Shown: piece by piece, positions 2,700-26,323 of the stretch | How the letters are laid out: each line of letters begins with the position of its first letter | Numbering within the stretch: the first letter of the stretch is position 1 | Notes under the pieces: generated by a model | The model's input: only the letters and a program-made list of their open reading frames with translations | Database searches by the model: none | What the model was told of the DNA's origin: nothing | Assembly (NCBI GenBank): GCA_002269645.1 | Contig: NIVC01003326.1 | Coordinates: 1-33,854, forward strand | Origin: Macrostomum lignano | Taxonomy: Eukaryota | Direction: 5' to 3' | DNA: 33,854 nucleotides | Position numbers and translations under genes: made by a program

Positions 2700-3271
2700 A
2701 AATTTGTTATTCACAAACCCGCGCACCCATCCTCCCCTAGTAGAACCTATAAATACAAGCGTTTTCGGGCAACTTTTTCTCCGCCGCGCGATTCTCCGAT
2801 TCGGTTAAGAAAGCAAATCGTGTTGGCTCGGTTCACTTGGAAAGCAGAAAGGAGAGAGAAGCTGTAAGAAGCCAGAAGGAAGGGCTATAAGAAGCCAGAA
2901 GAATAAGCTGTGAGAAGCCAGTAAGAAAGAAGCAAACCAACGGTCGCTTAGTTGGGCAACTCCTTCCCAGGGTAGCCGCTCTATGACTGGAAATTAGGAG
3001 TAGAAATTAATGCATTAGATCAGTGTTTGCCGCTCGACACTGCTACCAGGACTACTTGCATAATTTCAAGGAGTCCTTAGACTAAGATTCTGGACTTAGT
3101 GTTTTCCTAGGAATAATAAATGACTGAAGTCGTACACTAGAGTGATAGATATTATAAATTTACCACAACTAGGTGGCATCAGTAGGATAATTCAAGGAAT
3201 AATTTAAGTACACCTACGACAACTTGGTAACAGCAGTGGGATTTGAATAGACAGAAGTATCCTCTACGACA
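2700..3271 (+). mobile_element. Possible LTR remnant followed by primer-binding-site-like motifs
   Basis: TATAAATA near 2748. ...ACGACA-ACT-TGGTAACAGCAGTGGGAT at 3225-3242 resembles the complement of a tRNA-Leu 3' end, with a second similar motif at 3174-3188. No gag/pol and no paired LTR seen; left boundary approximate. Confidence 0.3.
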
Positions 3272-3344
3272 TAATTTTTAAAGTAGAATCTTTTTTTTCA
3301 TATTTTACATGAATACTTTAGTTGAAAAAAGAGAATTAAAATCA

Positions 3345-3719
3345 GTTTGAATCCCAAAACAATCCCGGGATTTAAGCCTTACAATCCCGGGATCCCAATC
3401 CCGCACTGTTGTAATCCCGAGGATCATAAATCCCGAAATTTCAAGTCCCAAAAAATCCCGGGATTGAAATCCCATGTTTTGAGGCTAAATCCCGGGATCC
3501 CAATCCCGCACTGTTGTAATCCAGAGGATCATAAATCCCGAAATTTCAAGTCCCAAAAAATCCCGGGATTGAAATCCCGTGTTTTGAGGCTAAATCCCGG
3601 GATCCCAATCCCGCACTGTTGTAATCCCGAGGATCATAAATCCCGAAATTTCAAGTCCCAAAAAATCCCGGGATTGAAATCCCGTGTTTTGAGGCTAAAT
3701 CCCGGGATTGGAATGCCTG
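3345..3719. repeat. 105-bp tandem repeat (3 copies plus partial) rich in ATCCCGGGAT palindromes, probably a DNA-transposon subterminal array
   Basis: Unit starts at 3383, 3488, 3593 and 3698; ends GGGATTGGAATGCCTG, resembling the inverse of a TAGGGATT-type terminus. Confidence 0.85.
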
Positions 3720-4492: not shown

Positions 4493-5320
4493 GGGTGGGT
4501 TTCACAAACGCGAAATTTCATAACCGCTAAAAGCACTTGCTTTCATAAACGCGAAACTTCACAAACGCGAAACTTCACAACCGCTAACTTTTTTGCAGTC
4601 ACTTTCATAAACGCGAAACTTCACAACCGCGAAACTTCACAACCGCTAAATCACCTACTTTCATAAGCGCTAAATTTCATAAACGCGAAACTTCACAACC
4701 GCTAATTTTTTTGCAGTCACTTTCATAAACGCGAAACTTCACAACCGCGAAACTTCACAACCGCTAAATCACCTACTTTCATAAGCGCTAAATTTCACAA
4801 CCGCGAAACTTCACAACCGCTAAATGTCGTCTACTTTCACAACCGCTAAATGTTATCTACTTTCACAACCGCTAAATGTCATCTACTTTCACAACCGCTA
4901 AATGTCATCTACTTTCACAACCGCTAAATGTCATCTACTTTCACAACCGCTAAATGTCATCTACTTTCACAACCGCTAAATGTTATCTACTTTCACAACC
5001 GCTAAATGTCGTCTACTTTCACAACCGCTAAATGTCATCTACTTTCACAACCGCTAAATGTCGTCTACTTTCACAACCGCTAAATGTCGTCTACTTTCAC
5101 AACCGCTAAATGTCATCTACTTTCACAACCGCTAAATGTTATCTACTTTCACAACCGCTAAATGTCATCTACTTTCACAACCGCTAAATGTCATCTACTT
5201 TCACAACCGCTAAATGTCGTCTACTTTCACAACCGCTAAATGTCGTCTATTTTCACAACCGCTAAATGTCATCTACTTTCACAACTGCGAAACTTTACAA
5301 CGGCCAAATGTCCTTCAAGT
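4493..5320 (+). repeat. Left foldback arm: outer TTTCA(C/T)AA(C/A)CGC modules, then about 18 copies of 26-bp TTTCACAACCGCTAAATGTC(A/G)TCTAC
   Basis: Directly visible; mirror image of 11770-12713. Confidence 0.93.
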
Positions 5321-8060: not shown

Positions 8061-10205
8061 ATGCCATTTGAATTTGTTGAAGGCCGTAGGGGCTCAAGGC
8101 TTCTCCTAATAGACCAGCATGCATACAGGTGCAAAAGAACATTGAACGAGAAGCACTATTTTACATGTCGTAATGAAGACTGCTTCGCCAAAGTTATGCT
8201 GAGTGGTGAGACTGCCACACACAGTGGGATTCATAACCATGGTCCAATCCCTGATGAAGAAATTGGAAAGATGAAGTTAAAGCGACGACTAAATGAAGCT
8301 GCGACAAGACAGCCAGAAAAGCGCCTACGAGTAGTTTTTGACGAAATAACAAATGATGAAGCAGCTGGGCCAGATGTTGGATTTCCAGAAGTGGAGCTCC
8401 GCATGTGGCGAGCAAGACGAGCTGTACAGCCTCGAATCCCAACATCTGTTGATGAGGCTGTTGAACTTCTGCATGACGTGGACATGCATCTGCAAAACTG
8501 CGGAGCAGATGGCAAGAAAGTTTTCCAGGGAAGCAGTCAAGTTGACCAGCATGCTGCTGTTTTTTTTGCTCACCCTGAACTCCTGGCTGAGCTTCAAAAT
8601 GCAAACAACATTTTCGTTGATGGCACATTCCGAGTTGTGCCTCGCCTGTTTTTTCAATTAGTGACCATTGGAATCGTTAAACAAGGTTTCTTTTTTCCTT
8701 GCTTTTTTGCGCTACTTACTGGCAAGACAAAGGCCCTCTACCATTTAGTGTGGTCGAAGGTAAAGCAGCTGTTTCCTGCCTTCGAGCCACTGAGTGTCAT
8801 GACGGATTACGAAATTGCGCTGCGAGATTCGCTGCTGGAAGCATTTCCGACATCAACCGCTCATGGATGTTGGTTTCACTACACGCAAGCTGTCCTCACG
8901 AAGCTAAAAAAGCTTGGACTATGGAGTGAAGTGTGCCGCAACACTGACGTTCGAAGCTATGTGAGACTGTTTTTGTGCTTGCCTCTGCTTCCTGCGCAAC
9001 ACCTTGCTGCACTTCATGCTGTCCTGCGACCTGAGACATTTGTTACAACACTTGCCAATGACAAGATGGAAGCACTGCATCGAGCCTACACGTACATCCG
9101 GACCTACTGGCTCGAGAGGGTTGGTGCAGCCATCCTCTCTGTGCACAACTGCGAAGACAGGACCAATAGTAAGCAGGAATCCTACCATAGTCAATGGAGG
9201 ACCTTTGTAGAGACCGCTCATCCCAATATGTGGGATTTCATTGTAGCGCTTTATTCCTCAACGAAAAGAAGCATTTGTTCAACCTATGCAGCTGACCTAA
9301 ATAGGCTAAAACGTGGTGTTCCAATCCGCCGAGCGCGAGGAAAGCGCAGTGTACTAAAAAGTATCCGCATTCGGCAGCAGTATGACCTGTTAAGCAGTGG
9401 ACGGGCAACTCCTCTGGAGGTTCTACGCAATTTGAGTGCATCAGCTGGTCTCCCTCTAGACGACCCACATGATGCTGCTGAACTGGCTGTAGGTCAGTTG
9501 CCAGACGTCGCCCAGCCGGCCCTTGGCGGCGCCGGTGGGCAGCCACAAGACGACGTCGCCCAGCCGGCCCTTGGCGGCGCTGGTGGGCAGCCGCAAGTCA
9601 TCGCCCAGCCGGCCCTTGGCGGTGCTGGTGGGCAGCCGCAAGACGTCGCCCAGCCGGCCCTTGGCGGCGCTGGTGAGCAGCCGCAAGACGTCGCCCAGCC
9701 GGCCCTTGGCGGCGCCGGTGGGCAGCCACAAGACGACGTCGCCCAGCCGGCCCTTGACGGCGCTGGTGGGCAGCCGCAAGTCATCGCCCAGCCGGCCCTT
9801 GGCGGCGCCGGTGGGCAGCCACAAGACGACGTTGCCCAGCCGGCCTTTGACGGCGCTGGTGGGCAGCCGCAAGTCATCGCCCAGCCGGCCCTTGGTGGTG
9901 CTGGTGGGCAGCCGCAAGACGTCGCCCAGCCGGCCCTTGGCGGCGCTGGTGGGCAGCCGCAAGTCATCGCCCAGCCGGCCCTTGGCGGTGCTGGTGGGCA
10001 GCCGCAAGATGACACCGTCGACCAGGGCCTTGGCGGCGGCGAACGACGATGCCCCGTATGTCTAGAAAACTTAGACTCTGCTTCCGCCACATATCCCTGT
10101 GGTCACGTTGTTTGTACCATCTGTTCAGAGAATATTCAGATCAGACTACTGCAGTGCCCTGTGTGTCGAGGCGATTGTGTGATGTTCATTCCTATTTTTT
10201 TCTAG
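8061..10205 (+). CDS. MULE transposase (FLYWCH + DDE) with Gly/Pro/Gln repeat linker and C-terminal C3HC4 RING finger, 714 aa
   Basis: N-terminal YFTC..C...HNH (FLYWCH-like); catalytic VDGTF, MTDYE, GCWFHYTQAV (CxxH), RTNSKQESYH; C-terminal CPVC...CGHVVCTIC...CPVC. Uninterrupted ORF, with an upstream acceptor TTTCCTCTTTCAG near 8027. Confidence 0.95.
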   Translation: MPFEFVEGRRGSRLLLIDQHAYRCKRTLNEKHYFTCRNEDCFAKVMLSGETATHSGIHNHGPIPDEEIGKMKLKRRLNEAATRQPEKRLRVVFDEITNDEAAGPDVGFPEVELRMWRARRAVQPRIPTSVDEAVELLHDVDMHLQNCGADGKKVFQGSSQVDQHAAVFFAHPELLAELQNANNIFVDGTFRVVPRLFFQLVTIGIVKQGFFFPCFFALLTGKTKALYHLVWSKVKQLFPAFEPLSVMTDYEIALRDSLLEAFPTSTAHGCWFHYTQAVLTKLKKLGLWSEVCRNTDVRSYVRLFLCLPLLPAQHLAALHAVLRPETFVTTLANDKMEALHRAYTYIRTYWLERVGAAILSVHNCEDRTNSKQESYHSQWRTFVETAHPNMWDFIVALYSSTKRSICSTYAADLNRLKRGVPIRRARGKRSVLKSIRIRQQYDLLSSGRATPLEVLRNLSASAGLPLDDPHDAAELAVGQLPDVAQPALGGAGGQPQDDVAQPALGGAGGQPQVIAQPALGGAGGQPQDVAQPALGGAGEQPQDVAQPALGGAGGQPQDDVAQPALDGAGGQPQVIAQPALGGAGGQPQDDVAQPAFDGAGGQPQVIAQPALGGAGGQPQDVAQPALGGAGGQPQVIAQPALGGAGGQPQDDTVDQGLGGGERRCPVCLENLDSASATYPCGHVVCTICSENIQIRLLQCPVCRGDCVMFIPIFF
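9504..10035 (+). repeat. In-frame 45/48-bp coding tandem repeat, 11 copies of (D/V)(V/I)AQPALGGAGGQPQ(D)
   Basis: Counted in the 714-aa translation. Confidence 0.95.
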
Positions 10206-13460: not shown

Positions 13461-13701
13461 CTGAAAATCGAATGAAATATAAAAAATTACGTTAAAATAC
13501 CTGAGCTTAAACAGTAGACGTTTATAGAACAATTTATAAAAAAATGAAGTGGTAGTATGATATAAAGGTCTGAGCCACACTTATTGCTCGGGCGCAGTGC
13601 GCGCCAGCTCGCTGGATGACTCAGCCCCTTATATCACACTACTACTACCAGGAGGTCAGAGTTGCAAGGTGTCTGAGATAAATATATAATTATTTATCCC
13701 C

Positions 13702-13732
<31 letters not shown>

Positions 13733-14090
13733 TGTGTGAGGGTGCTTAAGGGTGAGGGCATGTGTGGGTATTGGCATGTGGAATATTTCGCAGAACACAG
13801 ATTTTTCAGAATTTTTATACTTTTTAAAAGGGAGAGTGCCCTCGCCCTCATGCCCTCACTCATTTTGAAAATCACAAAAATAAGTGAAAAATGACTAAAA
13901 ACAGGTGAAAATGGTCTGAAAACAGCGATTTTTTGTTATTTTCAAATACTTTGAAAAGGTGCAATTTTCACGATTCCAGCTCTAAAACCATGAGAAAAGT
14001 TGGATTCACGGGTCAATTCAATGCAATTTCAGGTATATACAATATGAAAGTGTCATCCAATTTAACGATAGTAAATTTTAAATACATAAA

Positions 14091-14222
14091 ATGGCCTTCA
14101 GTAAACCATTATTTCTAGGTTCTGCATTAGATATTCAGTCAGCTATAACAAAACTACCCCCCATCTTCTTCACTGGAAAATATCCTGGCGAATTTCATAT
14201 TCCTGGGTATTCTTTCGCAGGT
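14091..14222 (+). CDS. Exon 1 of the Polinton PLA2-like (PLA2X)/integrase gene
   Basis: ATG at 14091: MAFSKPLFLGSALDIQSAITKLPPIFFTGKYPGEFHIPGYSFAG, ending in U at the group I 5' splice site. Confidence 0.85.
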
Positions 14223-15059
14223 TACGTTGTGGCCTGAGTGAGGAAGTCAATGTCCTTGTTAGTCATAGAATAAGCACTTGTTAAATTTTCTAAACTAAAA
14301 ATGGAGCAAACAGTTCGAAAAATTCTATACTGAACCAGTTGATGATAAGGTTGGGCATGATCAAATTCTTCATTGATCTTTTCCAAGAAGAGTTAATCAT
14401 TTCACACAAGATTAAAGTTATTCAAATGAGACTCGGCAGACTATATGAAATATTAGCAGAAAATTATTTTGGATTCGAGAAGGTAAAAAAGATAGACCTG
14501 GTTCACGTTGACCGAAAGATTGCATTAGAGCTTAAATCTTCTGATAACACGGACAATTCATCAAGTCGTGAAAGGAATTATCAGAAACTATTAGACTATA
14601 CAAATTCTTATCCCACCTACCAGTTGTATTATGTATGCATCAATAAAACTACAAAGGAACCTAAGAATATTTTACTAGACAATGGAATCACCCTTATACC
14701 AGGAGAATTTGCATTGAAATTTCTTTATGGAGATCAATACAAAAACATTATAACCAACATTAAACAAGTGCTTAATGATAGGCGACACCTTCGAATTGCG
14801 GGAACTCCGTCAACAACAGCCTCAAGTACCACTTCAGTTGAGAAATCTTCTGAAGGAACACAGGTAATTCCTGTTCCCAATGGTAACAAGCTTGAGGACA
14901 TGGTGGAAATCCGCAGCCAAGCTCCTAAGTCCGAACGAAGTTGACAAGGATATGGAGAAGGTTCAGAGACTTAATGGGGGTGGGGCTGAAGGATCTGGTC
15001 AATCCTGATGAAGCCTTAAGATAAAGTACAGCCTCTTTCGAAAGATTGAGGAACAACTG
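14223..15059 (+). ncRNA. Group I intron, IC1-type, 837 nt
   Basis: P1 (CAGGT/GCCTG with U-G pair); P3 (CACCTTC/GGGGGTG); P element AATTGCGGGAAC 14794; P5abc with AGTACC and GAAA loop; Q element AATCCGCAGC 14908; 11-nt receptor CCTAAG/TATGG; R element GTTCAGAGACTTAA 14961; S element AAGATAAAGTAC 15018; P9.0; terminal G 15059. Excision restores the reading frame and the G-P-G motif. Confidence 0.92.
14301..14780 (+). CDS. Intron-encoded PD-(D/E)XK nuclease (restriction-enzyme-like; candidate homing endonuclease), degenerate
   Basis: QMRLGRLYEILA...IDL...IALELKSSDNTDNSSS (E..D..ExK pattern). The likely start ATG at 14301 is out of frame with the 14339 ORF, and TAATGATAG near 14773 is one base out of frame, suggesting frameshifts at both ends. 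Confidence 0.65.
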
Positions 15060-16219
15060 CCTGGTACAAATTTAGACAAAAGACTCAATCCAATTACAGA
15101 CTGGCCTCGGTATGACAGTCTACCAATTAACCCAATAGATTGGACTGCTTACGCTCGTACTATCATGACAAAAGCTATAGAGATGCTGAAAAAACGTCTT
15201 CAACTCCAGAGGAAGCTCTAGCAAAGAAGCATATTGCTGATGAAACAATGATAACTGATTTAGATGCTATTCCAACCAGTGACTTGTCTGTGAAAGAGAG
15301 ACTCATTAGAAATCTAGTAAAGCGTATTATCAAAGCTAAAGTTCGGTTTGGATTAGGCATTCATACTCACAACCCCAACAATTGTACAGACTGTCTAACA
15401 ATTTATGGAAAGGGTCTTAGCTATGAAGATGCTGTGAAGCTGCATAGGGAATACAGAAAACCAAGACTGTTTAGAAAAATGATTCACTATGCAAAAGACA
15501 CAATTTGGCATGCAGATATCATTATCCTACCACCCGAAAGAGGTTACAAATATGCTCTCACTATCATAGATGGTTTTACACGTTACGCCTGGGCAGTTCC
15601 TTTGAAAACAAAGACGGGAGCGGAAGTTGCAGAAGCTTTCCAAAAAGTATTTAAGGAATCAGGAAGACGATCAGAGAGATTTTGTGTAGATGAAGGCAAG
15701 GAGTTTTATAATCAGCATATGTACAAGCTATACTCGTTTTGAAAAGACAACATAAGAAAGAAAGATGAAAATGGGGAGTATATTAACAAGACTTTTTCAA
15801 TTTATGGCGAGTCCAAGAACGCAATGATTGAGAGGTTCAATCGTACTCTCACAAATAAACTCTGGTTTGAATTCGATCTACAAGGAAACCAGAAGTGGCT
15901 CCACATATTGCCAGCTATTGTTGATAAGTACAACACAATCCATTCTGAGATTCTGATAACTCCTTCAGAAGCATCTAAACATCCTGAGCGAGTACCAAAG
16001 CCTTACTTCGAGGTTTCAAATGAGAAACCAAACTTTAAAGTAGGTGACAAAGTTCATATCTATAGATTCAAAGAGCACTTTGAAAAGGGTCGAAAGGGTT
16101 ATTGGAAAATTTCAAAGGTTTTTACGATTAAGAAATTTGTGTACTCAAATCCCATAAATTTTTCAACTAAAAATGAGCGCCTATCGAACAAACTGCAAAC
16201 GGGCGAAAGGTCAGATTGA
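15060..16219 (+). pseudogene. Exon 2: PLA2-like domain fused in frame to a Polinton retroviral-like (rve) integrase; one frameshift (about 15155) and one in-frame TGA (15740)
   Basis: PGTNLDKRL...PINPIDWTAY / YHDKSY...HIAD...KAKVRFGLG, then WHADII, IDGFTRYAWAVPLKTKT, FCVDEGKEF, MIERFNRTL (D,D,E triad). Confidence 0.88.
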
Positions 16220-16433
16220 AACGTCTGATTCACAACTACTAGTTGATAAAGAGGGTGAAGGAATCGGTGATATGATCAGTGGTGTCACAAACTTTTTATC
16301 AAATCATGGAAGTAAAATTGTGAGTGGAACTGATGCCATAGGTAAAACAGCAACAGCAGCTAAAAACATTTTCGACGCAAAGAAAATATACAGTGACATG
16401 TCTAAAGCAGGTGAGGAACTGGAATATATTTAA
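16173..16433 (+). CDS. Small Polinton ORF of unknown function (GEGIGDMISGVTNF...)
   Basis: Short amphipathic ORF between the integrase and the polymerase fragment; true start uncertain. Confidence 0.4.
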   Translation: MSAYRTNCKRAKGQIETSDSQLLVDKEGEGIGDMISGVTNFLSNHGSKIVSGTDAIGKTATAAKNIFDAKKIYSDMSKAGEELEYI

Positions 16434-16572
16434 GAGTGGAGTGAATATTCAATTATTTATCAAGAAGTCAAAAAATGTTAAGCTGACAGTTTTTGCACTA
16501 ATTCTTGAGCAAACAAAGAATGTTATCAAAGTTACCAGTGAATATCAAATGACTCGGGTTGAATAAGGTCAA

Positions 16573-16887
16573 ATGAATGGCTCGATAATTTCCGAAGCTG
16601 TATTCCTGCGGTCAAAGGAGTATGCTTTCAATACAGTTTCAGGAGAGTGTGTTAAGATCAAGGGAGTTGATAAAAGCAGTACAAATATAAAGTTTAAAAC
16701 ATTTAAAAACATACTATTGACAGATTACAAAGAGATTAGAAGAAGCCATGTAAGCATGACTGTAAAATATATAAAATATAGAAATAAAATATATATTCGT
16801 GATATTATGAAACAAACAATGAGTCACTTAAATGATAAAAGATATTATTTGGATCCTATAAGATCTATTCCTTTTCAGCCAATGTAA
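16573..16887 (+). pseudogene. C-terminal fragment of protein-primed family B DNA polymerase
   Basis: MNGSIISEAVFLRSKEY...KIKGV...LNDKRY...IPF matches the Polinton pPolB C-terminal pattern; the exonuclease and palm regions are absent. Confidence 0.82.
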
Positions 16888-19369
16888 TCTCATGGATAAC
16901 ATCTTCGTTTATTTTTTTCTTGCACTGTAGCAACACATTTCTAGTTTCATGCTGTTTACCATCTACGCCTATATCTGTCCTTATAATACTTACAATAATC
17001 ATTGGGATTCTTGAAGAAATCAGTTACGAATTGCTGTCGAAATTCTAGTTTTTATGATTTAGATAGGTTTCTATAATATTCACTCTCTCTTGCGGCAGTG
17101 TGAATTTCGCTAATAGGCACAAATGTTTTTTCCTCAGTTTCTAAAAATTCATAATTCTCTTCAAAGAAGTGCGCGAACCAATTACAATTCTGTATGGATT
17201 CATTAGTGTTCTCAATTACGTTTTCCGATAGATATATTTCGCCTTTTGTTTGTTTGAAAATTTCTAGTAGGTGTTTCATCTCTGCAAACTTATATTTAGT
17301 CTTAAACTCCTCACTTTTCAAATATGTATCGGCCTTGTAAGTGTGTGTCTCAGGATCAATCATTTCGTTATCTGTTGTATATTTGCACGGGTAATTAATA
17401 TAGACAATTCTCCTCTTCTCCGCATCTCCAATATTTTGTCTGAAGTCAGGCTTGTTGTTGCATTCGACTATCAGAGTTGCGTGTAAAACGACATTACACT
17501 GGCTTGAATATAAATTTCTACCATGGTAGCTTGGATAACCCCACCACCAGTTAGTAATTTTATTGATGCATTGTTCAAGACACCGCCTACTTCTTGACTG
17601 ATAACCAACCTCTTTTTATTAATTTGTGCTAGGGCTGGTTGTGGCTTGTCTATTCTTATTGGTGAATTCAAAACATCAGGACTCAGTGGTGCTGCATAAT
17701 CAGATTCTAGAGTTCTAAGAAGTAGGTTGTCCTCAACCCCCTTGCCATTTCCACCAGCGCCATCAAACATTATAAAGTTTTCAAAATTCTTACCCATTAG
17801 AGCTGTAACTATAACGGATTCCCAACTCTTTCTGTTCTCTGGATCTGGATGGATTTGGTTATGCAGATTAACAATGAAGCCATAGTCGTCATCACTCACT
17901 CTAAGTACATCCGAGTAATTATATCCCACCGATTTAGTAACGTAATCTTCATATCTATACTAGCGAAACTCACTTGTAATGAGGTCATATACTCCATCGT
18001 CAAACCCTAGCAAATTCCATTTCATGTCGAATTCAATTTCATTGTTAGTAAACCTCTCTTTGAACAAAGTAGTTACCTGTTTGAGTTTGTTGGCTCCTTG
18101 TATTGAATTTATATTCTTCATTGTGTTCTTTAGTTTCTTTTCAAGTGCTTTTAACTTCTCTTTATCATCAGCCTTCTTAATTGCAATTTCAAGTCTAGTC
18201 TTTCGGTGGTTTAACCCACTGCTAACAAGGTGTGATATTTTAAGAAATATGTCATTTATACTACTTAGTTCTCTCCACTTATCATCATCAAAATAGTAAA
18301 TACCATCGCTATTGTAAATTATATTATTTTTCTTATATTCAAAAACAACGGTTATGTTAACGTCAGTGAAATTATCATCAAGATACTAAATCCTACCATA
18401 ATAATCATTTTGCTTTTCCATTCCTTATATTTACCATAGTTTTCTTCACTAGCCCATTTCTTCAACGTACCGATAGTAAGTCTGTCCTGTGCATCAGCAG
18501 AGCTGGCACTGGTGCTATTCCACACTTTTTTACATGACTCGGAATCGAACTTATCATAATTTACTTTTGACCAATCAGTGAATACTTTGTAAATTTCATC
18601 ACCACTGTCTATGTCGCGGAGTATGAGTGCTACCTTGTACCAAGAATCATAGTCTTGGTTTTTGTGTTGTATTATACTTAACAACCTTGAAACTCCTTCA
18701 CAAGTGGGTGGTGGAACGGTGCTTTTTAGTGCTTGTTTATCGGGTTCTTGGTTTTCTGTTTTATCCTGTGGCTTAATTAATCTATTTATCTCCTCAAGAA
18801 TTACATATGGCATGTCAATTAACCCTTCGGGCTATATGTTTGTATTCCTTCATTTCACCATCGACATAATAGAAACCTGGTGGAGCAAATACTAAAGCCG
18901 GAATATCAAAACCCACACTTTGTTGAATCGTTACTTTTAATCCATCTACCTTGTTAAAGTAAAAGTGGTGACCCTTGTTTGTCTGAACAATCCAATCACA
19001 ATGAGTCATACACAGTTCATTCAACTCAGGGCATAGGTCAGCATTATCAATATCGATTATGGTTATACTTGAATTTCGAGTATCTATCCAAATCATGTTG
19101 TCTACCTCTGATCGAAATGGTGGGGAGGTTGAATTCCTATCTGCTTTGGTTGGCATACCTGACGGTATTTTTTTTGTTTTACTATTCCATGTTATACTGC
19201 AATTTCCGAATGTAAAATTACGTTCTCCATAGAGATTAATTAGTTTATCGTACGATTTTGTTTGTTTTAAATTTGTCAATCTTGGTGGTGGTGGTGCATC
19301 ATGGTTTTGAAGTGGATCCTGTACGATCACAGGAGAGACACTTAAATCGTTTTGATTTTTTCCTTCCAT
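16865..19369 (-). pseudogene. Prim-pol + PriCT-2 + D5-like SF3 helicase gene, fragmented by frameshifts and stops
   Basis: IIDID and QTNKGHHFYF (prim-pol motifs, 18815-19423 ORF); YDSWYKVA...DWSK..YDKF...W...TIGTLKKWA (PriCT-2); FDGAGGNGKG Walker A and RLVISQE Walker B (17471-17929). Confidence 0.85.
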
Positions 19370-19385
19370 TTTATTAAAAATAAAT

Positions 19386-19753
19386 TCAACGATATATTTT
19401 ATCGGTTTTAATGTACTTCTCAAAGGTTATGGGGAGTTTGAAAATGTTCGATTTCAGCATGACGAAAAATTCATCATTCCTTATGTGCTGTCTCGAAATC
19501 AATGCCCATTTATCAACATGTGCAAGATATACTCTGAATGAAAACAAATATGGGGGACATTTACAATCGGTGTGTTTTAATATTTCAGCTTTATATTCAT
19601 CGTAAGCTTTATCAATTTCTGCAATTAGTCGAGACTTTCGAGTGTGGGTTTTAATTTGAGAAAATGATATAATAGAATCATAGTATTTTTTGGTAGAGCA
19701 TTTCGTACACTTGGGTTATTAGCTTCCATTTTTTCTAGGAAAAATTTAGCCAT
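19386..19753 (-). pseudogene. Small unknown Polinton ORF (about 120 aa), one apparent frameshift
   Basis: Manual translation MAKFFLEKMEANNPSVRNALPK / YYDSIISF...KYIKTDKIYR*, directly upstream of the primase gene. Confidence 0.35.
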
Positions 19754-19851
19754 GTAGTTTTCATTTTTCAAGTCACAAAGTATTTTTTGAATATTTGGAA
19801 ACTAGCATGACCTCTTTGCTTACATTTTGACTCAGAGTTGTTTTTTGGCAG

Positions 19852-20112
19852 AGTAGGCAAACTTCACTCGATTGCCCCGAAGGGTCGCAGACATTCTGAT
19901 TGCATTGACACAGGAATTCGGGTTCTATTCGCGCTACACATAAACAAGTTTGCATTGCAACAATATGGTCGGCTATAGCAAAGCAAGTAGGCAAACTTCA
20001 CTCGATCGCCCCGAAGGGTCGCAGACACAGTCTGATGACTAACACAGGAATTCGGGCTTCTATTCGCGCTACACACAAACAAGCTCACACCGCAACAATA
20101 TGGCCAGCTATT
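19852..20112. repeat. Diverged 134-bp tandem duplication inside the Polinton
   Basis: AGTAGGCAAACTTCACTCGAT(T/C)GCCCCGAAGGGTCGCAGACA starts at 19852 and 19986. Confidence 0.85.
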
Positions 20113-21112
20113 GTCTGACCCCCGTAGACTTGCCACTTCAATAGATACTGTAGAGGTTCTACCCCCGCTCACCCACTCAACATTTCAATCTGACCAATAC
20201 TCGCGACCAAATCATCCGACCAAAAAAGTTTTAGCTTTGGTTTTGGTTTTGGATTTTGGCAACCAATTCTTTCTCTCCAGTTCGTCTATTTTTCTGTTAC
20301 TAAAAATAGACAAAAATGACGAACATTACACATGCATACAATCTGAATGAATGGCAAACAGAAGACCCAGTAAAAGTATCGTGCAGAAGATGGGTGGTAG
20401 TTTTGTTATAGCTGACTGAATATCTAAAGCATTTCCTAGAAATAATGGTTTACTGAAGGCCATTTTATGTATTTAAAATTTACTATCGTTAAATTGGATG
20501 ACACTTTCATATTGTATATACCTGAAATTGCATTGAATTGACCCGTGAATCCAACTTTTCTCATGGTTTTAGAGCTGGAATCGTGAAAATTGCACCTTTT
20601 CAAAATATTTGAAAAACACAAAAATCGCTGTTTTCAGACCATTTTCACCTGTTTTTAGTCATTTTTCACTTATTTTTGTGATTTTAAAAATGAGTGAGGG
20701 CATGAGGGCGAGGGCGCCCTCCTTTTTTAAAAGTATAAAAATTCTGAAAAATCTGTGTTCTGCGAAATATTCCACATGCCAATGCCCACACATGCCCTCA
20801 CCCTCAACACCCTCACACAATATATATATATATATATTATATATTTATCTCAGACACCTTGCAACTCTGACCTCCTGGTAGTAGTAGTGTGATATAAGGG
20901 GCTGAGTCATCCAGCGAGCTGGCGCGCACTGCGCCCGAGCAATAAGTGTGGCTCAGACCTTTATATCATACTACTACTAATTGAATATTTTTGTCTTTTA
21001 GTGCCTTCGGATGACAATGTCAGTGCTAATTGACTTGTCTAAAAATTCGATATTGACAAGCGGTGGTCTAAAATGCTAAAAAATCATTAAGAAACTATAG
21101 TTAGTACGTCAC

Positions 21113-23746: not shown

Positions 23747-26323
23747 GCGTCTGCAATTCATCTGCAAGTCATCTGCGTCTATGCCCCAACGGCCCCTCGG
23801 ACCAGCGAAGATCCATCTGAGACAGAAGCCCTTTACGACACCCTGGGCTGCACGCTTGATTCCCTCCCTGCTCGTGATTCTGTCATTGTCGCTGGTGACT
23901 TCAACTCGCCACTGCCAGCTGACGGCCGCTTGGTAAAGAACAGCTGTGGCACCCCCAATGCCAACTCTCCTTTTCTATCTAGTTTTATCCAGGCCAGAGA
24001 TCTGATAACTGTCAACGGCACCTTGCAACAGCGCTTCAGCAAGCTCCCAACTTTCTCTGGTCCCAACGGGCGAACCACTCGGCTGGACTGGATTCTCTGC
24101 CCAATTGGTCTGAGGTCCAGGGTGCGCAGAGTCCTCAATATCCGCCCCGACTGCGTTCAATCTGATCACCGCCTGGTGGCATGCGACTTCGACCTGCACT
24201 GGCAAAAGCTCCGGCCTGCGCCACCTCACCCGCTCTGGGCCGACCTGAGAAACCCGGACACGCGGCAGGCCTTCCTTCGCAAGCTGCTTGCCGCCACTCC
24301 TGCTCCAGCCGAGTCCTTCGAGTCTTTCCATCACGCTGTTGAGGATGCTGCAGCGCTTCTCCCACGGAGACAGGCAAACCATCCAAAGACACTGTGGGAC
24401 CGCGATCCCGTCATCTCCCAGGCAAGGCGGCATGTGCAGAGCACTGCTGCACTCCACGGCCATGACAGCGACCAGTCCAGTGCTGCCAGGGACGAGCTGC
24501 AGCGCATCTACGCCCAACGGACTGAAGCCTTCATCGAAGAGGTTGTGAGCGAAATCCAACTCGCCACTGACAACTGCCGCCATAGCGCTGCCTGGAGGGC
24601 CATCAACCAGCTGACAGGCAGGAAACCCAGGCCCAGCACCATCGTCGGCGCCGATTCCACCGAGCACCGCAAGGCTCTACTGGCCGCCCACTACCGCGAG
24701 GTGCTCAACGCGCCCGCTCCAACTGCGCCTCTTCTGCCAATCCCGGACTTCACTCCAGCCCAGCCGAGCGCCTTCAACACCGGCCCCATCACTGCAGGCG
24801 AGGTTGACCGAGCACTGAGGACCATGCGAGCTGATGCCGCCGCTGGGGTGGACGCCATCCCTCCCAGGGTCCTGAAGCTGCCCGAACTCACCCCAACCAT
24901 CACCAGCCTGCTGAACAAACACTGCAGCCTTGGAGGCAACGAGACCGCCTCAGCTCCTCAGCAATGGCGCACCTCCAAGATCGTCTCCATCCCGAAGAAA
25001 GGCGCCTCCACCAGCCTGGACAACCAGCGGGGCATCGCACTGGAATGCACAACGCCGAAGCTGCTGAACGCAATTCTGCGCAACCGCCTGCTGCCCGGCC
25101 TCAACCCGCTGCTGCTGAGCCTCCAAAGCGGCTTCCGCCCGGGTAGGTCCACCACCGAGCAGGTTGCCACCATCCGCTCTGTCATCGAGGCCTGCAAGAC
25201 CCGCCAGCGCTCCGTGTCAATCATCTTCGTCGACTTTCGCAAGGCGTTTGACTCGGTGTCCAGGCCTGCGATCGCGTGGCTTCTATCGCAATATGGCGTG
25301 CCTGCTGCGCTGGTGAGTGCGGTGATGGACCTCTACCGCGACTCCAGGGCTTTTGTCATGTCGAGCGACGGCCCCACAGAAGAGTTCGGCACCAGCTCAG
25401 GCGTTCTTCAGGGTGACACGCTGGCTCCTCTGCTCTTCCTCGTGGTTGTGGACTACGTGCTTCGTCGGTCCCTCCGCGAGGATGACAGCTACTTGCTGGT
25501 CCCACGCCGAAGCTCCAGACACCCTGATGTTTCGCTTCCCGCTCTCGCGTATGCTGACGACATCGCGCTGCTCTGCCGCGACCCAGCTGCGGCCCAGCGC
25601 GCTCTCACAAGGCTGTGCGACGAGGGCGCCCGTGTTGGGCTGCTGGTGAATGCTCGCAAGACGGAGGCGCTGCACGTGGGCACGAATACCGCCCCAACTC
25701 TAACGCTGCCCAATGGAGATCGCATCGCGGTGTGCGAGGACTTCCGGTACCTCGGCGCCCTGGTGATGAGCCCCGATGCGATTGTCTCCGACAGGAGGAA
25801 TCAGGCCTGGCGCGCCGCTCACCTCCTCAGGAACGTTTTTAATTCAGCTGCCAGAGACGACCTGAAGGTGCGCCTGTTTCGCACGGCCGTCGAGCCGATT
25901 CTTCTGTACGGCATGGAGGCTGTGCCGCTGACCGAAACGCGAGAGCGAGCCCTAGACGCGCTTTACCGATCGCTGCTGCGCTACGCGCTGGGCGTGCACT
26001 ATCCGGATCGCCTGCCGACCAACGCTCTGATGGCCCGCGCCGGAACTCCGCCCCTGAGTGCCATACTGCGCCGGCGCCGCCAGATGCTGCTGGGCCACTG
26101 CCTACGGACCCTGGGTCGCGGCGCGCCCGTCCCTCTGGCCCTGGCCATGCTGCACCGGCCGACCGAACAATTGCGCCGTGGCCAGGCTCGCACTGCCACC
26201 CTAATGAACTGCCTCATCGCTGACTTGCAGGCGCTTGAGCTGACCCCTCAGGCTGCTGCTGCCTGCCCCTCCCGCCTGTTCTGCGAACGCGTGCGCGCAA
26301 GGGGCCTCCCCTCTGCGTCTTAA
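23747..26323 (+). CDS. LINE ORF2: truncated AP endonuclease + reverse transcriptase, uninterrupted
   Basis: VYAPT, GDFN, LDWIL, SDHRLV (APE); QSGFRPGRST, DFRKAFDSV, GVLQGDTLAP, YADD (RT). The frame is also open upstream of the listed 23930 start. Confidence 0.93.
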   Translation, partial: ASAIHLQVICVYAPTAPRTSEDPSETEALYDTLGCTLDSLPARDSVIVAGDFNSPLPADGRLVKNSCGTPNANSPFLSSFIQARDLITVNGTLQQRFSKLPTFSGPNGRTTRLDWILCPIGLRSRVRRVLNIRPDCVQSDHRLVACDFDLHWQKLRPAPPHPLWADLRNPDTRQAFLRKLLAATPAPAESFESFHHAVEDAAALLPRRQANHPKTLWDRDPVISQARRHVQSTAALHGHDSDQSSAARDELQRIYAQRTEAFIEEVVSEIQLATDNCRHSAAWRAINQLTGRKPRPSTIVGADSTEHRKALLAAHYREVLNAPAPTAPLLPIPDFTPAQPSAFNTGPITAGEVDRALRTMRADAAAGVDAIPPRVLKLPELTPTITSLLNKHCSLGGNETASAPQQWRTSKIVSIPKKGASTSLDNQRGIALECTTPKLLNAILRNRLLPGLNPLLLSLQSGFRPGRSTTEQVATIRSVIEACKTRQRSVSIIFVDFRKAFDSVSRPAIAWLLSQYGVPAALVSAVMDLYRDSRAFVMSSDGPTEEFGTSSGVLQGDTLAPLLFLVVVDYVLRRSLREDDSYLLVPRRSSRHPDVSLPALAYADDIALLCRDPAAAQRALTRLCDEGARVGLLVNARKTEALHVGTNTAPTLTLPNGDRIAVCEDFRYLGALVMSPDAIVSDRRNQAWRAAHLLRNVFNSAARDDLKVRLFRTAVEPILLYGMEAVPLTETRERALDALYRSLLRYALGVHYPDRLPTNALMARAGTPPLSAILRRRRQMLLGHCLRTLGRGAPVPLALAMLHRPTEQLRRGQARTATLMNCLIADLQALELTPQAAAACPSRLFCERVRARGLPSAS

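Follow-up and report, generated by a model that had tools for sequence, protein, structure and literature searches.

A degenerate group I intron of a Polinton-like element in Macrostomum lignano carries an Eco47II-type nuclease gene: a candidate for homing through GGNCC sites

Introduction

What is the gene of a restriction-type nuclease doing inside a group I intron? The question is raised by a stretch of 33,854 nucleotides from Macrostomum lignano (contig NIVC01003326.1 of assembly GCA_002269645.1, positions 1 to 33,854 of the forward strand; hereafter the window), which holds the remnant of a Polinton-like element. The phospholipase A2 (PLA2)–integrase gene of this remnant is interrupted by a group I intron, and the intron contains an open reading frame (ORF) that a preliminary description, made from the letters of the sequence, had read as a PD-(D/E)XK nuclease of Eco47II type and as a candidate new homing system. 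Homing endonucleases fall into six recognised structural families (PMC3384342). In the literature searched, no report was found of an Eco47II/AvaII-type restriction enzyme inside an intron, and no paper was found that links the corresponding family, PF09553, to introns or homing.

The answer favored here, with a probability of roughly 0.6, is that what the window preserves in the PLA2-integrase gene is the fossil of a mobile group I intron, whose restriction-type nuclease is inferred to have cleaved GGNCC and thereby to have homed. The copy in the window is inactive: its nuclease gene carries two frameshifts, exon 2 of the host gene carries one frameshift and one in-frame stop, and the capsid genes of the element are lost.

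Architecture of the intron and its position in the host gene

The intron, its exons and its internal elements are arranged as follows, all on the forward strand.

14091–14222 (+): exon 1 of the PLA2-integrase gene, ending in the Gly codon GGT (14220–14222); read from ORF 14091–14237
14218–14236 (+): P1, formed by the last five exon bases (14218–14222) and the intron guide bases (14232–14236); from folding
14223–15059 (+): group I intron, 837 nt; from the Rfam core, the alignment with L001–L004, the exon frames and tblastn
14262–14283 (+): 5′ strand of the ORF-enclosing hairpin (P2.1-type); duplex with 14762–14780
14301–14944 (+): Eco47II-family PD-(D/E)XK nuclease gene; from the homologues P0001–P0011 and the invariant catalytic residues
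14762–14780 (+): 3′ strand of the ORF-enclosing hairpin, within the coding sequence; duplex with 14262–14283
14785–15059 (+): ribozyme core from P3 to P9 plus the terminal G; from the Rfam alignment and conserved alignment blocks
15060–16219 (+): exon 2, the remaining PLA2 domain plus the rve integrase; from tblastn with the exon-2 protein of L003 (76% identity)

An Rfam search of the window matched a single family, the group I intron RF00028, at 14711–15050 (+) with 83.5 bits and an E-value of 4.8e-20 (gathering threshold 50). The intron boundaries were set by sequence reading, translation in all frames, alignment with related loci (denoted L001 onward, and their proteins P0001 onward), exon reading frames and tblastn. 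The high-scoring segment pair to exon 2 begins at 15060, in agreement with the boundary, and the final intron base is a G at position 15059. On folding, P1 shows a U-G wobble at the splice site, and its guide bases are invariant in a five-sequence alignment.

Exon 1 matches exon 1 of L003, L004, and L021 as well as the intron-less protein P0275, and exon 2 opens with CCT GGT ACA at 15060. Spliced together, the exons would encode ...PGYSFAG|PGTNLDKRL..., in which the Y-x-G-P-G motif marks the calcium loop of a phospholipase A2 domain of parvovirus type; the intron splits the Gly and Pro codons of this motif. For the relatives, PF08398 (the phospholipase A2 domain) and PF00665 (rve integrase) are on record.

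The nuclease ORF is enclosed by a stem of its own. When the two ORF flanks were joined by a short linker and folded, the strands 14262–14283 and 14762–14780 paired with −19 to −23 kcal/mol, enclosing the interval 14267–14780 in which the preliminary description had placed the nuclease. Since this stem is located between P2 and the P3–P9 core, it is a P2.1-type hairpin, with the interval 14267–14780 inside it. This interval has a GC content of 31.3%, as compared with 47.5% in the ribozyme core and 42.5% in the window. The early reading of an AT-rich ORF between two P2.1 strands is confirmed. Equivalent ORF-enclosing stems, differing in sequence each time, occur in L001–L004, L022, and L023. The ORF-less intron of L029 lacks the hairpin, and its P2 runs directly into P3. 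Hence, the P2.1-type hairpin that holds the ORF is an addition to the intron. The homologous introns of L001, L002, L022, L023, and L029 were not detected by Rfam and were recognised by alignment; those of L001 and L002 are devoid of a P9 hairpin.

The intronic nuclease

Eleven homologous proteins were found in a large protein collection with 45 to 64% identity and E-values from 2e-49 to 4e-19. Five of them carry PF09553, a family placed in the PD-(D/E)XK superfamily by Steczkiewicz et al. (PMC3424549). In the alignment of all 12 sequences, E52, D68, E79, and K81 (E...D...ExK) and the following TDNSSSR are invariant, and the window copy retains the catalytic residues. A profile of this clade matches 331 cluster representatives among 1.84 billion proteins and reaches bacterial PF09553 proteins of ~195 residues with an E-value of ~1e-60. 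One bacterial member of the family, L006, adjoins a PF00145 C5 DNA methyltransferase, forming a classical restriction–modification pair. The window ORF alone gave nothing significant in NCBIfam, PHROGs, PADLOC, or the PDB sequences, and cluster look-ups for ten distant family representatives gave no names. Among the PDB sequences, the profile matched AvaII (6G3B) weakly (E 0.18); in this alignment, the catalytic D/K fall on D147/K163 of AvaII.

The predicted fold points to the same family. The AlphaFold model of an intact relative (pLDDT 88.9, pTM 0.81) matched, in a Foldseek search of the PDB, first the PD-(D/E)XK domain of DdmD and then EcoO109I, followed by XPF/Hef, McrC, and BbvCI. Over the whole domain, EcoO109I gave the best match, with an E-value of 1e-3, a probability of 1.0 and a TMq of 0.56. 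It is again the best whole-domain match of the unrepaired window ORF (pLDDT 80.5, TMq 0.58). The nuclease fold suggested by the preliminary description was recovered in this way, with the ORF as it stands and intact relatives, rather than a repaired ORF, as queries. Together with the PF09553 homologues, the profile match, and the invariant residues, this establishes the ORF as an Eco47II-type PD-(D/E)XK nuclease, and relatives of the family in giant-virus bins of IMG/VR bear out the early link to large DNA viruses. A viral fold library yielded weak generic PD-(D/E)XK matches only. The best viral fold match (BFVD) is A0A1C9C4X3, an uncharacterised protein of 542 residues from Heterosigma akashiwo virus 01. 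P0025, a protein of 542 aa from an NCBI source, bears an Eco47II-like domain at its C terminus, and the two entries may be one and the same protein.

Compared with intact relatives, whose nuclease has ~160 residues, the nuclease ORF of the window is broken by two frameshifts. It has no premature stop, and no break falls within the catalytic core. All peptide strings quoted from it at the outset lie in the frame of ORF 14339–14944. It had been described as frameshifted at both ends; the two frameshifts are real, but the 3′ end is unbroken and enters the ribozyme core like that of intact relatives. The last ~50 codons of the window frame thus traverse the core, and the tails of the intact homologues are translations of P3–P7. 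In divergent copies, the nuclease frame stays open for 50 to 70 codons across the core (14785–14944 in the window; P0001, P0003–P0005, and P0007). Over this tail, the ratio of nonsynonymous to synonymous substitution rates (dN/dS) is ~1 and dS is low, which indicates constraint on the RNA and not on the protein. For the nuclease domain, dN/dS is 0.15 (L003/L004) and 0.18 (L022/L001).

These values bear on the possibility that the ORF is a passenger that plays no part as a nuclease, either a maturase assisting splicing or a decaying insert. Some intron proteins are known to double as maturases, and both the broken window copy and the copy of L001, which is interrupted once, would suit such a passenger. 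The selection on the domain speaks against it, as do the four catalytic residues that are invariant in 12 sequences and the intact copies in L002, L003, L004, and L022; moreover, the core can do without the insert, as is seen from the homologous intron of L029, which has no ORF. A mere passenger is, therefore, very improbable.

Intron and nuclease states at a single gene site

Among the relatives, one gene site is found with several nuclease ARRANGEMENTS. L001–L005 and L022 share the intron together with its ORF, inserted at the identical Gly|Pro codon boundary of the PLA2-integrase gene. At 2670–3273 of L023, which comes from the sample of L022, the intron recurs in the identical position with an HNH/endonuclease VII-type gene, interrupted once, in its hairpin. 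In L029, from IMG/VR, the Gly|Pro site is occupied by a homologous intron of ~300 nt that has no ORF. Directly upstream of the target gene lies a GIY-YIG gene, for which PHROG homing-endonuclease families were matched (E 1e-9). The positions in L029 are:

2804–3145: free-standing GIY-YIG gene
3283–3582: ORF-less intron

In a further state, a free-standing Eco47II-like gene is situated directly upstream of an intron-less PLA2-integrase gene (L024 and L025/L026); in L028, a divergent Eco47II-like paralogue takes this place upstream of the target gene. In L024 (731–766) and L028 (~5170–5200), the target motif is Gly-Ala-Gln instead of Gly-Pro-Gly and is free of GGNCC. The same replacement also changes the canonical calcium-loop motif of the phospholipase domain in these two loci.

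Intron-less and intron-bearing alleles were sampled together: L021, which is intron-less and shares 73% identity with the exon-2 protein of L003, comes from the same sample as L002, and L028 was co-sampled with L022/L023. In the 120 closest PLA2-integrase proteins, an uninterrupted Gly-Pro is present in 57, whereas 8 begin at the Pro codon and 5 have Gly-Ala or Gly-Thr. Three of the proteins starting at Pro (P0274, P0282, and P0287) were traced to intron-bearing loci, and a further one, P0276, has the exon-2 N terminus of the intron-bearing L004. In a rough neighbour-joining tree, the intron-borne nuclease copies form one clade beside the free-standing copies of the elements; the copies from IMG/VR giant-virus bins group among bacterial-type proteins.

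No Rfam intron was found near the IMG/VR family members L007–L016, a scan of IMG/VR with the integrase of L003 gave no match, and the scan of a single metagenome returned distant intron-less PLA2 genes only. An intron-core pattern, TGCGGGAA-N50-80-CAATGGTAA, occurs in at least 118 viral contigs of IMG/VR (L032–L149), many of them in giant-virus bins, although some of the matches may be due to chance. These pattern matches suggest a wide occurrence of this type of intron among large DNA viruses. The Eco47II domain and the PLA2-integrase gene are absent from these at least 118 loci, where tblastn matches represent the translated ribozyme core only.

The homing role put forward initially gains support from this distribution, namely from the constant position of intron and gene, the co-sampled intron-less alleles, and the HNH and GIY-YIG genes at the same locus. 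Hallmarks of homing genes are present: the nuclease is encoded in the intron or beside the target gene, the intron is patchy among related alleles, and the coding sequence is under selection.

The target site and the avoidance of GGNCC

All eight intron-containing junctions that were read (window, L001–L004, L022, L023, and L029) have the sequence GGT|CCN. As Gly is encoded by GGN and Pro by CCN, GGNCC is present wherever a Pro codon follows a Gly codon, and the insertion point of the intron lies between GGN and CC. Outside the junction, this word is avoided. The expected counts below derive from a first-order Markov model.

Window element: 0 GGNCC observed, 9.2 expected
L003: 0 observed, 4.8 expected
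L023: 0 observed, 2.8 expected
L029, whole 10.7-kb contig: 0 observed, 6.1 expected
Window element, L003, L023, and L029, taken whole: 0 observed, 22.9 expected
L001, last 13.2 kb: 0 observed, 5.1 expected
L022, last 8.5 kb: 0 observed, 4.7 expected
L028, last 8.3 kb: 0 observed, 3.7 expected
All nuclease- or intron-bearing stretches: 1 observed, 45.7 expected
L030, related element lacking intron and nuclease: 29 observed, 31 expected
Window flanks: 73 observed, 55 expected

In the same sequences, the control word CCNGG occurs about as often as expected. The sole GGNCC among the nuclease- or intron-bearing stretches is the junction itself, at the extreme end of contig L025 (734–738); this contig end might be an assembly break at a presence/absence polymorphism of the intron. 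Likewise, the intron-less L021 contains one GGNCC, located at the junction. Neither L001 nor L022 nor L028 has a methyltransferase family recorded for any of its called genes. A nuclease specific for GGNCC, acting on these genomes, would be expected to leave such a pattern, and avoidance of the site explains how an element can carry such an enzyme and no methyltransferase.

Eco47II homologues have been assigned to GGNCC (PMC10305163), whereas AvaII cleaves G^GWCC and EcoO109I RG^GNCCY (PMC7337904). The preliminary description had proposed a GGWCC-type target around the junction. The location stood, with GGT|CC at eight junctions and GGNCC purged from the elements; GGWCC as the sole candidate was rejected, the namesake site of the family being GGNCC.

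A separate case of depletion is L016 (GVMAG-M-3300022752-26), an 8.3-kb locus from a giant-virus bin with 61% GC and an Eco47II-like fragment: it contains 16 GGNCC versus 54 expected, and 70 CCNGG versus 53 expected. L012–L014 show a milder depletion of GGNCC.

Proposed homing cycle and alternative roles

A homing cycle can be proposed from these observations. The intron-encoded nuclease would have retained cutting at GGNCC. Every intron-less allele would bear this site exactly at the insertion point, since Gly-Pro is always GGN-CCN, and synonymous changes could not remove it. The elements of the lineage would have purged all other GGNCC sites while carrying no methyltransferase, so that an intron-less genome meeting an intron-bearing one would be cut once, at the junction. 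Repair of the cut genome from the intron-bearing copy would constitute homing. The intron would then split the site and confer immunity, as would a Gly-Ala replacement. The free-standing nuclease genes upstream of the target gene would fit the free-standing-to-intronic route proposed for homing endonuclease genes.

A broader version of this proposal holds that a type IIP enzyme with a five-base site could home with no need of a long one. Its specificity would come from genome-wide avoidance combined with the genetic code, making the Gly-Pro junction a unique target for which Eco47II-like, HNH, and GIY-YIG nucleases may compete. This version is tentative, its odds being judged slightly short of even. 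The same caution applies to its corollary that junction cutting might be escaped in two ways, by a change of the protein, as in the Gly-Ala variants, or by an intron that splits the site.

Several points weigh against homing through GGNCC. The specificity of cutting is extrapolated from the family name and from site avoidance, and the Foldseek E-values are modest (1e-3 to 7e-3). The sample is small, comprising about a dozen loci, mostly on short metagenomic contigs, and the site-free stretches of L001, L022, and L028 were delimited after inspection of the data. L025 has a free-standing nuclease gene upstream of a target that keeps its junction GGNCC, at the point where the contig ends. L029 is free of GGNCC yet has no Eco47II-like gene; the avoidance could, hence, be imposed externally, by another element, a giant virus, or the host. 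Finally, a five-base cutter unaccompanied by a methyltransferase would be expected to cut host DNA too, and the window flanks contain GGNCC at normal frequency.

In a different role, the nuclease would serve as a restriction-type weapon that degrades the DNA of the host, a giant virus, or a competitor, a function commonly ascribed to the restriction enzymes of large algal viruses. That its gene lies in the intron or next to the integrase gene would then be incidental. The normal frequency of GGNCC in the host-like flanks, an inferred site of just five bases, genome-wide avoidance with no methyltransferase on record, free-standing nuclease copies, and relatives in giant-virus bins all accord with a weapon. 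Such a role does not account for the nuclease sharing its hairpin position with the HNH gene and its target-gene neighbourhood with the GIY-YIG gene of relatives, nor for the intron interrupting the one GGNCC that no synonymous change can remove, nor for the patchy presence of the intron among close alleles. A weapon in place of a homing enzyme is considered unlikely, although the two roles are compatible with each other.

The case of L029 bears on another alternative, a conventional homing endonuclease with a longer evolved site around the junction, the depletion of GGNCC being the work of another enzyme in the environment. Known PD-(D/E)XK homing enzymes do recognise long sites (PMC3384342). 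Besides the GGNCC-free L029, several IMG/VR loci with family members are also depleted of GGNCC, which suggests that such enzymes are common in this milieu. On the other hand, the protein shares the small size of the family's bacterial five-base cutters (~160–195 residues) and has no added DNA-binding domain, its C-terminal tail shows no selection at the protein level, and the flanks of the junction vary among intron-carrying lineages. A long recognition site is, therefore, as improbable as a weapon, and homing through GGNCC remains the preferred reading.

Comparison with known systems

The nuclease resembles the type IIP enzymes Eco47II, AvaII, and EcoO109I in family (PF09553), PD-(D/E)XK residues, size, and the EcoO109I fold, and the weak profile alignment with AvaII (E 0.18) shows the motif after the catalytic Lys to be common to both. 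It differs from bacterial Eco47II types in being encoded in a group I intron, or beside the target gene, of eukaryotic virus-like elements. It also departs from restriction–modification pairs: the called genes of L001, L022, and L028 show no methyltransferase, whereas in the bacterial L006 a C5 methylase gene lies next to the nuclease gene. The elements appear to protect themselves by avoidance of the site and by the intron instead of methylation.

A functional parallel among homing enzymes is I-Ssp6803I. This enzyme recognises a long site, in contrast to the five-base site proposed for the intronic Eco47II-like ORF. It is absent from the PDB sequence matches and from the 50 Foldseek matches listed for each PDB search, which suggests a separate, independent recruitment of the restriction fold. 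I-Ssp6803I, encoded in the group I intron of a cyanobacterial tRNA gene, is likewise a nuclease of restriction fold within a group I intron, with the intron-less allele as the presumed target in both cases (PMC3384342).

In collaborative homing (Zeng, Bonocora and Shub 2009, as summarised in PMC11296320), a free-standing homing endonuclease acts together with an ORF-less intron. L029 with its ORF-less intron and upstream GIY-YIG gene has this arrangement, and L024, L025, and L028 resemble it in having the Eco47II-like gene upstream, a gene that is intronic elsewhere. In contrast to collaborative homing in phages, the elements are eukaryotic Polinton-like viruses, and three nuclease families are found at one target locus.

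Group I introns of Polinton-like viruses have been described before: they belong to RF00028, measure 309 to 376 bp, and are found in a short gene that precedes the capsid gene, with no endonuclease identified (PMC12220804). The present intron is likewise an RF00028 member within a protein-coding gene of a Polinton-like virus; unlike those introns, it resides in the PLA2-integrase gene and carries a nuclease gene.

The surrounding element and its flanks

The element that hosts the intron is delimited by terminal inverted repeats of ~600 bp, whose arms are 96 to 99% complementary.

13548–20978: remnant of a Polinton-like element of Polinton-like virus (PLV) type, ~7.4 kb, without capsid genes; from the inverted repeats
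13548–14173: left terminal inverted repeat in three contiguous arms, overlapping the start of exon 1; from a repeat search
20381–20978: right terminal inverted repeat; from a repeat search
17471–19423 (−): fragments of a primase-helicase gene spread over several ORFs; PHROG matches with E 2.7e-11 and 2.3e-6

Because the left repeat includes the beginning of exon 1, a partial reversed copy of the exon start lies at the right end of the element. The adjacent ORFs at 17471–19423 (−) look like parts of a single broken primase-helicase gene. Genes from related loci, used as tblastn queries, matched nothing in the element beyond the PLA2-integrase gene with its intron ORF and part of the following gene, and no capsid gene was found in it. 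The window element, hence, shows inverted repeats, an integrase, and primase-helicase fragments; in L001, L022, and L028, a double jelly-roll (DJR) capsid gene accompanies the rve gene, and in L022 and L028 there is, in addition, a faint match to an A32-type ATPase. The window holds a single copy of the element and thus does not show the co-resident Polintons invoked in the preliminary description.

Outside the element lie two GC-rich ORFs, at 23930–26323 (+) and 8061–10205 (+). One of them encodes a long interspersed nuclear element (LINE)-type reverse transcriptase (E 2e-21 to L1 ORF2p), and the other a protein of 714 residues that contains a tandem peptide repeat internally and ends in a RING finger. 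The LINE-type reverse transcriptase and the RING-finger protein indicate that the window is eukaryotic chromosomal DNA holding a deleted Polinton-like remnant.

Implications

What would be new is a homing system that eukaryotic virus-like elements have built from type IIP restriction enzymes, PD-(D/E)XK homing enzymes as such being already known from I-Ssp6803I. That a target may be made unique by genome-wide site avoidance together with the genetic code is possibly a new principle. If the proposal is true, it would provide a direct link between restriction enzymes and homing endonucleases: a type of enzyme from bacterial restriction–modification would drive intron mobility in eukaryotic virus-like elements, with avoidance of the site replacing methylation. 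The free-standing nuclease, the ORF-less intron, and the nuclease-bearing intron would form a natural series at one site, and this series would correspond to the route by which mobile introns have been proposed to arise. It would also explain the position of the intron in the catalytic loop of a conserved virion enzyme, and GGNCC-free genomes would serve as a compositional marker for this lineage of Polinton-like viruses.

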